A stretch of DNA of 6,756 nucleotides, from positions 1 to 6,756 of the forward strand of contig NW_021829176.1 in assembly GCF_006345805.1 (NCBI RefSeq), written 5' to 3'. Positions 1,224 to 6,756 of the stretch are shown piece by piece. Below the pieces are notes generated by a model, which was not told the origin of the DNA, searched no databases, and worked only from the letters and a program-made list of their open reading frames with translations. Origin of the DNA: Octopus sinensis. Its lineage: Eukaryota. Both the position numbers and the translations under genes were made by a program. Every line of letters begins with the position of its first letter. The stretch's first letter is position 1.

Positions 1224-1230
1224 TCAAAAT

Positions 1231-1376
1231 TACATCGACCTCAGTATTCAGCTGGTACTTATTTTTTCGACCCCCGAAAGGATGAAAGGCAAAGTCGACC
1301 TCGCCGGAATTTGCATTCGGAACGTAGCGATGGGCGAAATACCGCTAAGCATTTCGTCCAGAGTGCTAACGATTCT
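1231..1376 (-). mobile_element. Family-1 SINE, second unit of a head-to-tail dimer (starts at AGAATCGTTAGC, lacks the 3' tail)
   Basis: The reverse complement aligns to the copies at 2622 and 3781 from the A-box region through GGTCGATGTA. Confidence 0.95.
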
Positions 1377-1597
1377 TATTTCTTTATTGCCCACAAGTGG
1401 CAAAACATAGAGACGACAAACAAAAACAGACAAAGGGATTAAGTCGATTTCATCGACCCCAGTGCATAACTGGTACTTAATTTATCGACCCCTAAAGGAT
1501 GAAAGGCAAAGTCGACCTCGGCAGAATTTGAACTTAGAACGTAACGGATTTGAACTCAGAACAGAGCATGCTAACGATTCTGCCAGCTCGCTGCCTT
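1372..1597 (-). mobile_element. Family-1 SINE with tail type A ending ...AAAGAAATAAGAA(T), and a rearranged head with a duplicated B box
   Basis: Minus strand starts AAGGCAGCGAGCTGGCAGAATCGTTAGC. A 15-bp direct repeat ATTTGAACT(T/C)AGAAC sits at 1526-1540 and 1548-1562. Confidence 0.95.

Positions 1598-1599
<2 letters not shown>

Positions 1600-1656
<57 letters not shown>
1600..1656 (-). repeat. (TAA)19 microsatellite, probably the (TTA)n 3' tail of the SINE at 1657-1800
   Basis: Perfect 57-bp repeat directly abutting the 3' end of the minus-strand SINE. Confidence 0.95.
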
Positions 1657-1657
<1 letters not shown>

Positions 1658-1800
1658 GGTACAAAACCTGGAATTTGTGTGGAGTGGGTAAATCGATTAT
1701 AACGACCCCAGTGTTTCACCGGTACTTAATTTATTGACCCCGAAAAACGCCGCTAAGCATTTCGCCCGGCGTGCTAACATTTCTGCCAGCTCGCCGCCTT
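1657..1800 (-). mobile_element. Family-1 SINE with tail type B and an internal deletion of about 60 nt that removes the B box
   Basis: The head AAGGCGGCGAGCTGGCAGAAATGTTAGCACGCCGGGCGAAATGCTTAGCGG joins directly to TTTCGGGGTCAATAAATTAAGTACC. The tail ...CACAAATTCCAGGTTTTGTACC differs from tail A. Confidence 0.93.
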
Positions 1801-2073
1801 ATTGCCGCACTTGATAAATCGAGAACACAACTCAGCTTTCGCCATGCAAATCACGGACAATGCTTCCACAAGATTCGTCGGTCTCACATCTTGAAGATAA
1901 ATAATGGCTGACCAACCCACAGTTATGTCGACCCCCAACAACACAAAGTGCCCTTTCTTACTATAACTGAAAGCAAGCAGGAAAATGTTTGCTTTTCTCT
2001 GTCTTCCTCTCTCTTGACCTCTTACTCGCTTGTTTTGTCCCTCTTGTTTTTGAACTGTCTGCTTAATCTCCAG

Positions 2074-2592: not shown

Positions 2593-2621
2593 TGTGTGTG
2601 TGTGTGTGTGTGTGTATGTGT
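2593..2621. repeat. (TG)n microsatellite, left flank of the SINE trimer
   Basis: Directly visible. Confidence 0.97.
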
Positions 2622-3176
2622 AAGGTGGCGAGCTGGCAGAATCGTTAGCACGCCGGGCGAAATGCTTAGCGGTATTTTGCCTGCCGTTACGTTCTGAGTT
2701 CACATTCCGCCGAGGTCGACTTTGCCTTTCATCCTTTCGGGGTCGATAAATTAAGTACCAGTTACGCACTGGGGTCGATATAATCGACTTAATCCGTTTG
2801 TCTGTCCTTGTTTGTCCTCTCTGTGTTTAGCCTCTTGTGGGTAGTAAATAAATAGGTATTTCGTCTGCCGCTACGTTCTGAGTTCAAATTCAGCCGAGGT
2901 CAACTTTGCCTTTCATCCTTTCGGGGTCGATTAAATTAAGTACCAGTTACGCACTGGGGTCGATATAATCGACTTAATCCGTTTGTCTGTCCTTGTTTGT
3001 CCTCTCTGGGTTTATCCCCTTGTGGGTAGTAAAGAAATAGGTATTTCGTCTGCCGCTACGTTCTGATTTCAAATTCCGCCGAGGTCAACTTTGCCTTTCA
3101 TCCTTTCGGAGTCGATAAATTAAGTACCAGTTGGGGTCGATCTAATAGACTGGCTACCCTCTCAAAAATTTCGTGC

Positions 3177-3178
<2 letters not shown>
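2622..3178 (+). mobile_element. Family-1 SINE trimer: one head followed by units with tail A, tail A, tail B (period 184/185 bp)
   Basis: GGTATT recurs at 2671, 2855 and 3040. Units 2 and 3 lack the first ~50 nt of the head. Unit 3 ends in the B-type tail (GACTGGCTACCCTCTCAAAAATTTCGTGCC). Confidence 0.96.

Positions 3179-3228
<50 letters not shown>
3179..3228. repeat. (TG)25 perfect microsatellite
   Basis: Directly visible. Confidence 0.99.
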
Positions 3229-3305: not shown

Positions 3306-3377
3306 GACTGATAGAGTAAGAACTGGGGGTCGATTTGTTCGACTAAAACTCTTCAAGGCAGTATTCCAGCATGGCCG
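3306..3377 (+). mobile_element. 3' fragment (tail type C) of family-2 SINE
   Basis: CTGGGGGTCGATTTGTTCGACTAAAACTCTTCAAGGCAGTATTCCAGCATGGCCG is homologous to 6687-6733 within the window. It matches my recollection of the octopus SINE tail ...AGGCGGTGCTCCAGCATGGCCGCAGTC. Confidence 0.8.
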
Positions 3378-3471: not shown

Positions 3472-3636
3472 GGCGCAGGAGTGGCTGTGTGGTAAGAAGC
3501 TTGCTTATCAACCACACGGTTCCAGTTTCAGTCCCACTTCGTAGCACCTTGGACAAGTGTCTTCTACTATAGCCTAGGGCCGACCAAATCCTTGTGAATG
3601 GATTTGGTAGACGGAAACTGAAAGAAGACCGTCGTA
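3472..3636 (+). mobile_element. 5' half of a family-2 tRNA-derived SINE with a CORE-like segment
   Basis: A-box-like TGGCTGTGTGG and B-box-like GTTTCAGTCCC. ACCTTGGACAAGT resembles the start of the CORE/MIR domain (ACCTTGGGCAAGT). Octopus OR1/OR2 SINEs are known CORE-SINEs, but I cannot verify the exact family name. Confidence 0.85.
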
Positions 3637-3696: not shown

Positions 3697-3780
3697 GAGC
3701 AACTATATGAAAGCATTATTACTGTTTATAACTGTAATAATGAGGTGGTTAGCAAGACTTCTACCTAAACAGGTATAATA

Positions 3781-4017
3781 AGGCGGCGAGCTGGCAGAAA
3801 CGTTAGCACGCCGGGCGAAATGCGTAGCCGTATTTCAACCGCCGTTACGTTCTGAGTTCAAATTCCGCCGAGGTCGACTTTGCCTTTCATCCTTTCGGGG
3901 TCGATAAATTAAGTACAAGTTACGCACTGGGGTCGATATAATCGACTTAATCCGTCTGTCTGTCCTAGTTTGTCCCCTCTGTGTTTAGCCCCTTGTGGGT
4001 AGTAAAGAAATAGGTAT
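3781..4017 (+). mobile_element. Full-length family-1 SINE monomer (tail A) with a 10-bp TSD AGGTATAATA
   Basis: TSD at 3771-3780 and 4012-4021. A-box-like TGGCAGAAACG and B-box-like GAGTTCAAATTCC are present. The central GCCTTTCATCCTTTCGGGGTCGATAAATTAAGTAC resembles, from memory, the Meta/MESC SINE domain. Confidence 0.97.
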
Positions 4018-4109
4018 AATATGAAATATTTGAATAAAAGAAGAGTAAAAACACCGCTTGCGAAAGATGAAAGCGAAAAGCTTCAAAAACCACCAATCCT
4101 ACGATAAAT

Positions 4110-4162: not shown

Positions 4163-4198
4163 GGCCTAGCTTCAGGATGGAACCCGAAGACAGCCCAC

Positions 4199-4417
4199 AT
4201 ACCTATTTCTTTACTACCCACAAGGGGCTAAACACAGAGGGGACAAACAAGGACAGAGATAGGTATTAAGTCGATTACATCGACTTAATTAATCGACGCC
4301 GAAAGGATGAAAGGCAAAGTCGACCTCGGCGGAATTTGAACTCAGAACGTAACGGCAGACGAAATACGGCTACGCAATTCGTCCGACGTGCTAACGTTTC
4401 TGCCAGCTCGCCGCCTT
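4199..4417 (-). mobile_element. Family-1 SINE monomer (tail A) with a 19-nt internal deletion and a 14-bp TSD ACAGCCCACATACC
   Basis: TSD at 4190-4203 and 4420-4433. It shares subfamily-diagnostic bases with the 3781 copy (GAAACGTT, TGCGTAGCCGTATT, GTCCCCTCTG). Confidence 0.97.
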
Positions 4418-4598
4418 AAACAGCCCACATACCCCAAATCTATTTCCAAAATATTTACCACGTCAACGCGTGTGCGTTTCGAACTTTACACGTACCCATA
4501 CACGTAACTCACAAGCATACAGGCACTTGCGCGCGCACATTATTATTAATCTTTCGTTTAATCCATATAAGTGACGTTTTATTTCCATTTGATCGCTG

Positions 4599-4803: not shown

Positions 4804-5358
4804 GCACACACACACACACACACAACACACACACACACACACACACACATACAGACACATATACACACGTCCACACGCATACATATGCACACGCACGCAC
4901 ATACACACACATATATTCACACACACATGTCCACACACATATGCACACACACACACATGTCCACACACATATGCACACACACACACACGCACACACACAC
5001 ACACGTCCACACACATGCACACACTTACATACATACACATATGCTCACACACACGCACACAAGCACACACATACACATACGTCCACACACATGTACACAA
5101 ACACACACATAGACACACATATACTCACACCCACACACGTCCACATACACATACACACACATATTCACACACACACATGTACAAGCGCACACGTTCATAC
5201 ACACACACACTCACGCATGCACACACACATACACACACATATATTCACACATATACTCACACACACATTCACACAACACACACCTCCACACAGACACACA
5301 CACATTTACTCACACACACGCACACACCCATGCACACACACACACAAACACACACACT
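4804..5358. repeat. Compound (CA)n/(CATA)n/(CACG)n microsatellite block
   Basis: Directly visible. It contains a perfect 30-bp tandem duplication at 4921-4980. Confidence 0.98.
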
Positions 5359-5462: not shown

Positions 5463-5933
5463 CAATGTTCCGCAAACCCTTTTTTCACTTAAGGTACACC
5501 TACATTCTTTTCGAAATTCGGCGGCACACCTGAACTAGAAATATAACTAAAAGTACAGCGGGGTGGGAATTATATTTAGGTTACACTGCGGCACATCTAG
5601 CATCGTCTAGTGCAGTGGTTCCCATACGTTTTCGGGCTACTGCCCCCTTGACACCCAGACCACATTCCTAGTGCCCCTACCCCAAGTAACCGTCACAAGC
5701 AGAGACCTTTTTCTGAAGCAAATTCAAAGCAACTTTATTTCACAAAAGCTTAACCTAACGAACCCATTATTTCGTTGTTTTTACATAAATCGCTACCCTC
5801 ATTGTCACCCCACTTTTCTTCAACGCCCCCAATCGAACTTCCTCCCCCCCCCAGGGGGAAATACTGCCCACTTTGGGAACCACTAGTCTAGTGGCACATC
5901 AGCGTGCCACGGCATACCGGTTGCAGAGTACTG
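5463..5933. mobile_element. Older hAT-like non-autonomous element (about 190 bp once the nested insert is removed)
   Basis: Imperfect TIRs CAATGTTCCGCAAAC (5463-5477) and the reverse complement of 5919-5933, CAGTACTCTGCAACC, match at 10/15. G(C/T)GGCACA motifs recur at 5521, 5588 and 5891. No TSD was found (GACCAACC versus GTTTAATA). Confidence 0.55.
5613..5885. mobile_element. hAT (Charlie-like) MITE, 273 bp
   Basis: TIRs CAGTGGTTCCCA (5613-5624) and TGGGAACCACTA (5874-5885) match at 11/12. A perfect 8-bp TSD GTCTAGTG sits at 5605-5612 and 5886-5893. The 8-bp TSD and TCTAG target core are established features of hAT/Charlie elements. Confidence 0.93.
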
Positions 5934-6087
5934 GTTTAATAGGTGTGCCAAAATCGTCGAAACGGGTGATCAAACTTCCAAGAGCACCAATTACTATTGG
6001 TATCCCGTCTACTCTCTTCATTGACCACAACCATCGTATTTCCCACTTCAAATCGTCATAGTTATTTATTTTCGCTTCATCTTTCAC
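5934..6087 (-). mobile_element. Non-LTR retrotransposon fragment, R4/Dong-like restriction-like endonuclease (RLE) C-terminus
   Basis: The translation KINNYDDLKWEIRWLWSMKRVDGIPIVIGALG fits the K..KY..L..EI.RLW....V.VIPIVIGALG motif of R4/Dong-type ORF ends. Similarity stops at the hAT TIR (5933). Confidence 0.8.
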
Positions 6088-6640: not shown

Positions 6641-6733
6641 AAAAAGAAGAGAGACGTTAGAATAGCTGTCAGATTTTGAATAAATGCTGGGGTCGATTTG
6701 ATCAACTAAAATCCCTTCAGTGCGGTGCCCCAG
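6641..6733 (+). mobile_element. Diverged 3' fragment (tail type C) of family-2 SINE
   Basis: CTGGGGTCGATTTGATCAACTAAAATCCCTTCAGTGCGGTGCCCCAG aligns with 3323-3369. The left boundary is approximate. Confidence 0.75.
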
Positions 6734-6756
6734 AATAATCAGAAGAACAAACAAAC

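Follow-up and report, generated by a model that had tools for sequence, protein, structure and literature searches.

Tandem repeats derived from SINEs are already known from squamates and limpets. In the SINE-derived satellites (sSat) of squamates, a portion of a tRNA-derived SINE is repeated in tandem and the terminal unit is longer, extending to the end of the SINE; short loci made up of a few variable units are known as well (Vassetzky et al. 2023, PMC10702118). Their origin has been left to unequal recombination or repeated insertion, with no further mechanism given for the junctions (PMC10702118). In the limpet Patella caerulea, the 179-bp satellite PcH-sat derives from the 3' part of a Nin-SINE, lacks boxes A and B, is pericentromeric and accounts for about 10% of the genome (PMC11121367). 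The first tandem duplication of a dispersed element is an unexplained step in the origin of transposon-derived satellites, and both of these studies left it open.

Two other kinds of composite are relevant. Template-switch chimeric retrocopies, exemplified by U6/L1 chimeras, the end-to-end jumping of R2 and the microhomology at L1 5' truncations, consist of segments of different RNAs in one orientation that are joined at short microhomologies and have a single target duplication or none. Multimers of full-length elements are formed by the mammalian SINEs B2, Dip and Ves, which have head-to-tail neighbours in the same orientation (40-49% of copies for B2 and Dip in rodents); according to the authors of that study, insertion into a tail and a dimeric template are indistinguishable (PMC8466645).

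The window, that is, the whole 6,756-nucleotide stretch of Octopus sinensis DNA analysed here, contains a small and old example of a mobile element starting a tandem repeat. A single SINE head is followed by three head-less units (2622-3178), namely two full units of 184 and 185 bp and a last unit with a different tail. Like the squamate sSat, this array repeats a SINE portion in tandem and has a longer terminal unit. It differs from them in that it has only 2.5-3 units, shows no homogenisation, mixes tail subfamilies and is joined where 5 bp of the element's 3' end match its head. Similarly, PcH-sat and the octopus array are both ~180-bp mollusc tandem repeats of SINE origin; unlike PcH-sat, the octopus array retains box B and is a three-unit repeat, known here as a locus and not by its abundance. 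In the literature searched, the coverage of which was incomplete, no description of head-less arrays of octopus SINEs was found; the A. fangsiao genome paper contained nothing on SINEs, and the sequence strings of the SINE were absent from the paper texts searched. What is new here is the logic of the junction, a mimic of the 3' end inside the head that is backed by target duplications, together with the mixed-tail chimera.

Anatomy and age of the head-less array

The window is rich in repeats and contains eight copies or pieces of one SINE of ~238 bp. Copies of this family with 87-94% identity were detected by BLAST in three species, O. vulgaris, O. sinensis and O. bimaculoides, in 24-kb loci surrounding the rhodopsin gene. 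These loci (L014-L016) were reached from octopus rhodopsin through the members of its cluster and provided ~24 kb of non-redundant octopus DNA, giving a total of ~31 kb compared, in which the window had been picked because of its trimer.

The SINE consists of a head starting from AAGGCGGCGAGCTGGCAGAA with a box-A-like motif, a box-B-like motif (GAGTTCAAATTCC), a core (GTCGACTTTGCCTTTCATCCTTTCGGGGTCGATAAATTAAGTACCAG) and alternative tails. Its dispersed copies have target-site duplications of variable sequence (9 and 14 bp at two monomers), as is the case for tRNA-derived SINEs. Neither ARAGORN nor Rfam recognised a tRNA in the head, though the box-A-like TGGCAGAATCG and the box-B-like GAGTTCAAATTCC are present. 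The element appears to be an octopus tRNA-derived SINE with several tail subfamilies (A, B and others) that have the head, the core and the last ~27 nt in common. Clean tail-B monomers were found in O. vulgaris (L014, 22712-22518, minus strand) and O. bimaculoides (L015, 18941-19170 and 226-40), and yielded the tail-B consensus CTGGGGTCGATCTAATCGACTGGCCCCCTCCCCCAAAATTTCGGGCCTTGTGCCTAGAGTAGAAAAGGATAT; tail B is a real subfamily. Tails A and B differ in the middle and have the last ~27 nt in common (CCTTGTGGGTAGTAAAGAAATAGGTAT versus CCTTGTGCCTAGAGTAGAAAAGGATAT), and one machinery probably moves both. The array and its immediate flanks, all on the plus strand, are composed as follows.

2593-2621, plus strand: (TG)n ending in TATGTGT, immediately 5' of the SINE head
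2622-2670, plus strand: sole head of the array (SINE positions 1-49), with box-A-like TGGCAGAATCG; of the GAATCG...GCTTAGCG type
2671-2854, plus strand: unit 1, tail A, 184 bp, with the internal GGTAT (2671-2675) at its start
2674-2677, plus strand: T4 run in unit 1, a sequence motif
2698-2707, plus strand: box-B-like GTTCACATTC in unit 1, a sequence motif
2855-3039, plus strand: unit 2, tail A, 185 bp; 5' part with C18 and A49 as in unit 3, 3' part resembling unit 1
3040-3178, plus strand: unit 3, tail B, 139 bp; 7 bp (TACGCAC) missing, 3'-truncated at TTGTG of the B consensus
3179-3228, plus strand: (TG)25, directly 3' of the truncated tail B

Tandem Repeats Finder (TRF) reported a repeat at 2671-3132 with a period of 185, 2.5 copies, 94% matches and a score of 831, and the GGTAT motifs starting at 2671, 2855 and 3040 give spacings of 184 and 185. 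These results confirm the head-A-A-B anatomy and the period described in the initial annotation. Chance recurrence of one 5-mer within a 238-nt element is not improbable (roughly 0.2); the tandem structure is far beyond chance. Both junctions consist of GGTAT, which is at once the 3' end of tail A and a motif inside the element's own head, where a box-A-like TGGCAGAA is also located (2634-2641). Units 2 and 3 begin at head position 51 without any spacer. The array combines a tandem SINE portion and a longer terminal unit, as in sSat, with a single head, whereas full-length SINE multimers have a head on every unit.

Units 1 and 2 end in tail A (...GTAGTAAAGAAATAGGTAT), and unit 3 departs from tail A after GGGGTCGAT. 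From there unit 3 tracks the B consensus to ...TTTCGTGCC and ends where the consensus reads TTGTG, at the start of (TG)25; no continuation of tail B was found past (TG)25 (local alignment, p = 0.27). The different tail that had been noticed on the last unit is thus that of the octopus tail-B monomers, the consensus of which it fits with a local alignment score of 60. Both ends of the array lie in (TG)n, and with the 3' end in such a tract no target duplication is readable.

The internal site of the tail-B monomers reads GCTTAGCGGTAT, with point changes in two of the three, and that of the two tail-A monomers reads GCGTAGCCGTAT. The trimer head has the GCTTAGCGGTAT form, as in the tail-B monomers, with GAATCG upstream. 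As the initial annotation had stated, both clean monomers of the window carry CGTAT at this site, but an internal GGTAT is not distinctive of the array, being present also in the copy at 1376-1225 and in the tail-B monomers. GAATCG was found in none of the three B monomers and neither of the two A monomers; it is present in the copies at 1225-1376 and 1377-1600 and in a head piece from O. vulgaris, all of which belong to composites. The tail-A units of the composites also have the GTCCTCTCTG variant in common, in addition to the GAATCG heads, unlike the two clean monomers. Given the GCTTAGCGGTAT form of the head and the tail B of the last unit, the trimer head and unit 3 may together represent a single resident B element into which tail-A material was inserted.

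The substitutions listed earlier for the units were also correct: units 2 and 3 have gccgCtacg and gtcAac, and unit 1 has gccgTtacg and gtcGac (alignment columns 18 and 49). A crude estimate of chance sharing of the derived states C18 and A49 by units 2 and 3 is ~0.04. Unit 2 is a mosaic, matching unit 3 at columns 9-49 and unit 1 from the core onwards, with a switch point between columns 49 and 95 that falls in the most conserved core. It could have arisen by unequal crossover between units 1 and 3, from a long 5' part templated by the resident copy, or from an independent RNA, and does not discriminate between the models.

Unit 1 is 94.1% identical to unit 2, 93.5% to an unlinked monomer and 94.4% to an O. 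vulgaris unit. The units are no closer to each other than to unlinked copies, and therefore the array is old and was never homogenised; with three units, it differs from the many loci or long homogenised arrays of sSat. By this measure, the units are as old as the dispersed copies, there was no recent amplification, and the array dates from the mobile period of the family. By itself, the locus is small, old and probably inert.

Target sites and junctions outside the array

The window contains two clean tail-A monomers and, upstream of the array, a cluster of three copies on the same strand.

3771-4020, plus strand: clean tail-A monomer (3780-4017) with internal CGTAT; target-site duplication AGGTATAAT at 3771-3779 and 4012-4020
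4190-4433, minus strand: clean tail-A monomer (4204-4419) with internal CGTAT and a 19-bp internal deletion; target-site duplication at 4190-4203 and 4420-4433
1600-1801, minus strand: first copy of the three-copy cluster, internally deleted, tail B-like (C); (TTA)19 follows at 1600-1656
1377-1600, minus strand: tail-A copy, head rearranged with its box-B segment duplicated; ends in AAATAAGAAT; directly after the (TTA)19 tail of the upstream copy
1225-1376, minus strand: copy 5'-truncated from head position ~18 (AGAATCGTTAGC), with internal GGTAT and no spacer to the copy at 1377-1600; ends in GTAAT TTTGAAAT(AAT)n

The target duplication of the second monomer reads ACAGCCCACATACC on the plus strand and GGTATGTGGGCTGT on the minus strand. 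The duplications of both tail-A monomers open with (A)GGTAT, for which the chance is about 4^-6 x 4^-5 (~1e-7). Therefore, both sites already had GGTAT before the insertion, and priming thus makes use of microhomology to the 3' end of the element. At an O. bimaculoides tail-B monomer, ATAT-GTGAATTCTCT lies upstream, compared with ATAC-GTAAATTCTCT at the 3' end. Because of the tail-A duplications and this ATAT/ATAC match, pairing of the 3' end with the target over 4-6 nt at the start of reverse transcription is, judged from these sites, the rule.

A second head-to-tail junction of the window is present on the minus strand at 1372-1376, where AAATAAGAAT is joined to CGTTAGC. It represents a partial match (AGAAT versus GGTAT) and lies at a head position different from that of the trimer. 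Excluding the trimer, two of the four tail-A ends are joined to SINE-internal sequence, more than random hits on a 5-mer would give, and the joined copies are all on the same strand. Two copies are 3'-truncated at a match to the adjoining microsatellite, namely unit 3 at TTGTG/(TG)25 and the copy at 1225-1376 at GTAAT/(AAT)n. Only the minus-strand pair 1801/1600 forms a full-length multimer, with a head on each copy and the preceding tail as the joint. The B2, Dip and Ves multimers, which are full-length and have their own heads and A-rich tail joints, are like this pair and unlike the head-less, spacer-free trimer. The head of the copy at 1377-1600 has TGCTCTGTTCTGAGTTCAAAT, which duplicates the box-B region, in place of the segment between GTTAGCA and CCGTTACG.

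Beyond the window, the ~24 kb of non-redundant octopus DNA contained one further tail-A-to-GGTAT junction. It is located at 24010-24257 (minus strand) of O. vulgaris locus L014, in a patchwork of SINE positions 91-233 (with tail A), 50-110 and 1-50, in this order. The first piece, following the flank, ends in AAAGAAAT, which is joined to CGGTATTTCG in the same manner as tail A is joined to GGTAT in the window; the second piece starts with CGGTATTTCGTCTGCCGTTACG..., and the third extends from AAAAGGCGGCGAGC to GCTTAGCG and is followed by the other flank. The head piece ends exactly at the internal GGTAT, and the flank AAATGAC resembles AAATACC of the SINE. Between identical flanks, O. bimaculoides has 795 bp of unrelated sequence and no SINE, and the O. 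vulgaris patchwork replaces those 795 bp. Therefore, the patchwork is one three-piece insertion with a target deletion.

This patchwork has one orientation, microhomology at its junction and no target duplication, and thus looks like the template-switch chimeric retrocopies. However, known chimeras usually join different RNA species at their 5' ends, whereas the octopus composites join RNAs of the same SINE family at one preferred internal site that mimics the 3' end. The patchwork, with its target deletion and with no resident SINE at the O. bimaculoides site, fits template switching combined with internal priming, and not insertion into a resident head; the end of the head piece is what priming at the internal motif would give. 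The tail-A-to-GGTAT junction in L014 could also have been copied from a pre-existing multimer instead of being made anew.

Joining of the head-less units

Reverse transcription primed by microhomology at GGTAT, and not later DNA amplification, is in our view the probable process, at about 0.6, by which the head-less units became joined; this value covers the two variants described below together. The putative partner reverse transcriptase would start where a DNA 3' end pairs with the RNA, normally with ...ATACC-3' on the terminal ...GGUAU, and the putative partner LINE would have a 3' end in common with ...TAG(AG)TAGAAAAGGATAT or ...GTAGTAAAGAAATAGGTAT. Heads of the GCTTAGCGGTAT type hold the same five bases at positions 51-55, so that a DNA end ...ATACC at this place would be a ready primer for another tail-A RNA. 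Template jumping and microhomology at 5' junctions are established for non-LTR reverse transcriptases from work on R2 and L1. The predicted RNA fold of the element is no better than that of shuffled sequences (z = -0.93), and so gives no structural support for a pause or cleavage site; a structural hotspot of the RNA at position 50, which we had considered, was dropped for the same reason.

In the first variant, the primer would be a nascent cDNA that has passed the internal GGUAU, and the reverse transcriptase would switch templates, so that the whole composite would enter (TG)n in one insertion. In favour of this variant are the O. vulgaris patchwork, the large proportion of tail-A ends that are joined and the GAATCG type of the head. 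It needs three RNAs in one event, however, as well as a tail-A RNA with C18 and A49. Template switching is the variant that we would place slightly ahead, although this preference is tentative.

In the second variant, which is the model proposed in the initial annotation, the primer would be a nick at the GGTAT of a resident copy, where a tail-A RNA would be reverse-transcribed and its 5' end resolved by homology, adding one unit per round. A target overhang of 9-14 nt (GGTATTTCGTCTG...) would be identical to cDNA positions 51-64 and would prime the second strand in register, yielding a head-unit-unit product with no visible duplication; we infer the in-register, head-less unit formed by such homology-guided priming from the standard model of target-primed reverse transcription. 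The part of this model that concerns GGTAT as the priming and target motif of tail-A elements is borne out by the target duplications of both monomers, and the 9-14 nt length of these duplications would allow the pairing in register. The GCTTAGCGGTAT form of the head, which is that of the B monomers, the tail B of the last unit and a reading of unit 2 as a resident-templated 5' part with an RNA-templated tail are also in line with it. Priming at a resident head fares less well at other points. The patchwork that contains the O. vulgaris junction has no target duplication, and O. bimaculoides is devoid of a resident copy at that site; the joined tail-A ends (two of four outside the trimer) are too frequent for random 5-mer hits; GAATCG is present in the trimer head and in none of the three B monomers; and the model predicts identical unit starts over 9-14 nt, whereas the first 15 bases of units 1 and 2 include 2 differences. 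With three possible sources for the unit 2 mosaic, the addition of one unit per round is one possible course of events among others. Taken as a whole, we regard the resident-copy model as possible but rather unlikely.

An origin at the DNA level would involve a microhomology-mediated tandem duplication, by slippage or break repair, between the two GGTAT copies that flank a unit, followed by unequal crossing-over and by an ectopic exchange bringing in tail B. The unit is indeed flanked by 5-bp direct repeats, unit 2 resembles a hybrid of units 3 and 1, and unequal recombination has been offered for the squamate satellites (PMC10702118). However, the units are no closer to each other than to unlinked copies or those of other species, so that the duplication would have to be as old as the insertions, and tail B and the B-type head need extra events. 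In addition, the O. vulgaris patchwork and the pieces 3'-truncated at microsatellites would be left unexplained. We thus consider this origin unlikely.

Still less probable is a multimeric master element, a dimer or longer, that was transcribed and retrotransposed as a whole, the junction being inherited. The same junction position at an unrelated locus in another species, the second of only two loci compared, would agree with such a master, as would the GTCCTCTCTG variant and the GAATCG heads that set the composite tail-A units apart from the clean monomers. Against it, RNA polymerase III terminates at runs of T, and the TTTT at 2674-2677, after box A, would stop it; the internal units have no box A; and an A-A-B element with a truncated B tail is not plausible as a master. 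An assembly artefact, in which repeats were collapsed or mis-joined in this repeat-rich region with its microsatellite flanks, can practically be dismissed, because the units differ at 11 of 185 positions and have different tails and clean junctions, and a similar junction is present in an independent chromosome-level assembly. A tandem repeat of the hammerhead/retrozyme type was also considered and rejected, since an Rfam scan at E<=1 gave no ribozyme match in 2622-3178.

Joining by GGTAT-primed reverse transcription, the reading that we prefer, suggests a broader hypothesis that is more doubtful: the SINE family may grow its own tandem arrays, the internal GGUAU making every nascent cDNA or resident head a substitute target and ~185-bp units arising far above the chance rate. 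If this is true, the sequence of the SINE would itself encode a defined first step towards a satellite of nucleosome size and towards tail-swapped chimeras. Together, the 5-bp match at the junction, the target duplications of the monomers and the independent one-step patchwork make this a concrete hypothesis that can be tested by a census, for which the chromosome-level octopus assemblies GCA_951406725.2, GCA_006345805.1 and GCA_001194135.2 exist. For repeat annotation, SINEs account for ~11.6% of the O. vulgaris genome and mostly belong to unclassified families, and head-less units and mixed-tail chimeras will inflate the counts of 'unclassified SINE' in this species.

Related and neighbouring repeats

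The first 30-39 nt of the core (GTCGACTTTGCCTTTCATCCTTTCGGGGTCGATAAAT...) recur in unrelated eukaryotic metagenome contigs, which fits a deeply conserved SINE domain. The core may be Nin/Deu-like, an assignment that serves here as a lead. Octopus repeats have been annotated as tRNA-Deu (PMC13282606). In a metagenome scan, 13 contigs had only 20-39 nt of the core in common with the octopus SINE, several of them by chance. Contigs L002, L003, L005, L006, L008 and L012 contain a longer common element (...TTTGCCTTTCATCCTTTCGGGGTCGATAAATGAGTAGTAAGCTGC...GGTGGCGCCATCTGGTGAACGCTTACGAGG...) that carries the octopus SINE core, and this set probably represents SINEs of other marine invertebrates. No match to the SINE was obtained when viral contigs and bacterial and archaeal genomes were scanned for its patterns, and a search of the protein collection with the junction-spanning reading frames of the SINE gave no candidate.

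A degenerate reading frame at 5899-6087 (minus strand; ...KINNYDDLKWEIRWLWSMKRVDGIPIVIGALGSL...) has weak relatives only, with E values down to 3e-10 and 44-62% identity. In an exhaustive profile search, these relatives were short unnamed proteins from TARA ocean and other eukaryotic assemblies, and the frame is probably a C-terminal remnant of a retroelement protein. The loci of the relatives contained no copy of the SINE of the array, and the protein collection searched with this degenerate transposon frame provided no candidate for more octopus DNA.

The SINE cluster is bracketed by two impure tracts, (TG)n at 256-726 and (CA)n at 4805-5357 (~470 and ~550 bp), which form an inverted pair with 70% complementarity. 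Spurious Rfam matches to mir-297 come from the long (TG)n/(CA)n tracts. An unrelated second SINE family is represented at 3474-3636 of the window (plus strand; GGCGCAGGAGTGGCTGTGTGGTAAGAAGC...GGACAAGTGTCTTCTACTATAGCC...), between (TG)n/(TATG)n on the upstream side and (CA)n on the downstream side; O. vulgaris has copies with 86-88% identity (L014, 19342-19493 and 20408-20538).

A tail-B monomer with ~70 bp of downstream sequence lies next to the same flank in opposite orientations in O. vulgaris (L014, 22447-22712) and O. bimaculoides (L015, 18948-19204). The difference could stem from a small inversion, or a larger composite repeat could be present in two copies. A further SINE copy of O. bimaculoides, which is older (L015, 528-686, minus strand), has (TG)n directly upstream of its head, like that at 2593-2621 of the window; in this genome, SINE 5' ends may regularly be associated with microsatellites. 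Finally, a fourth tail type (GGGGTCGATTTGWTCRACTAAAA...) is represented by two plus-strand pieces at 3323-3375 and 6688-6735. Both start at CTGGGGTCGAT, which is either a recurrent 5' truncation point or the start of a separate short element, and upstream of the piece at 3323-3375 lies TAGAGTAAGAA, a sequence similar to the end of tail B.
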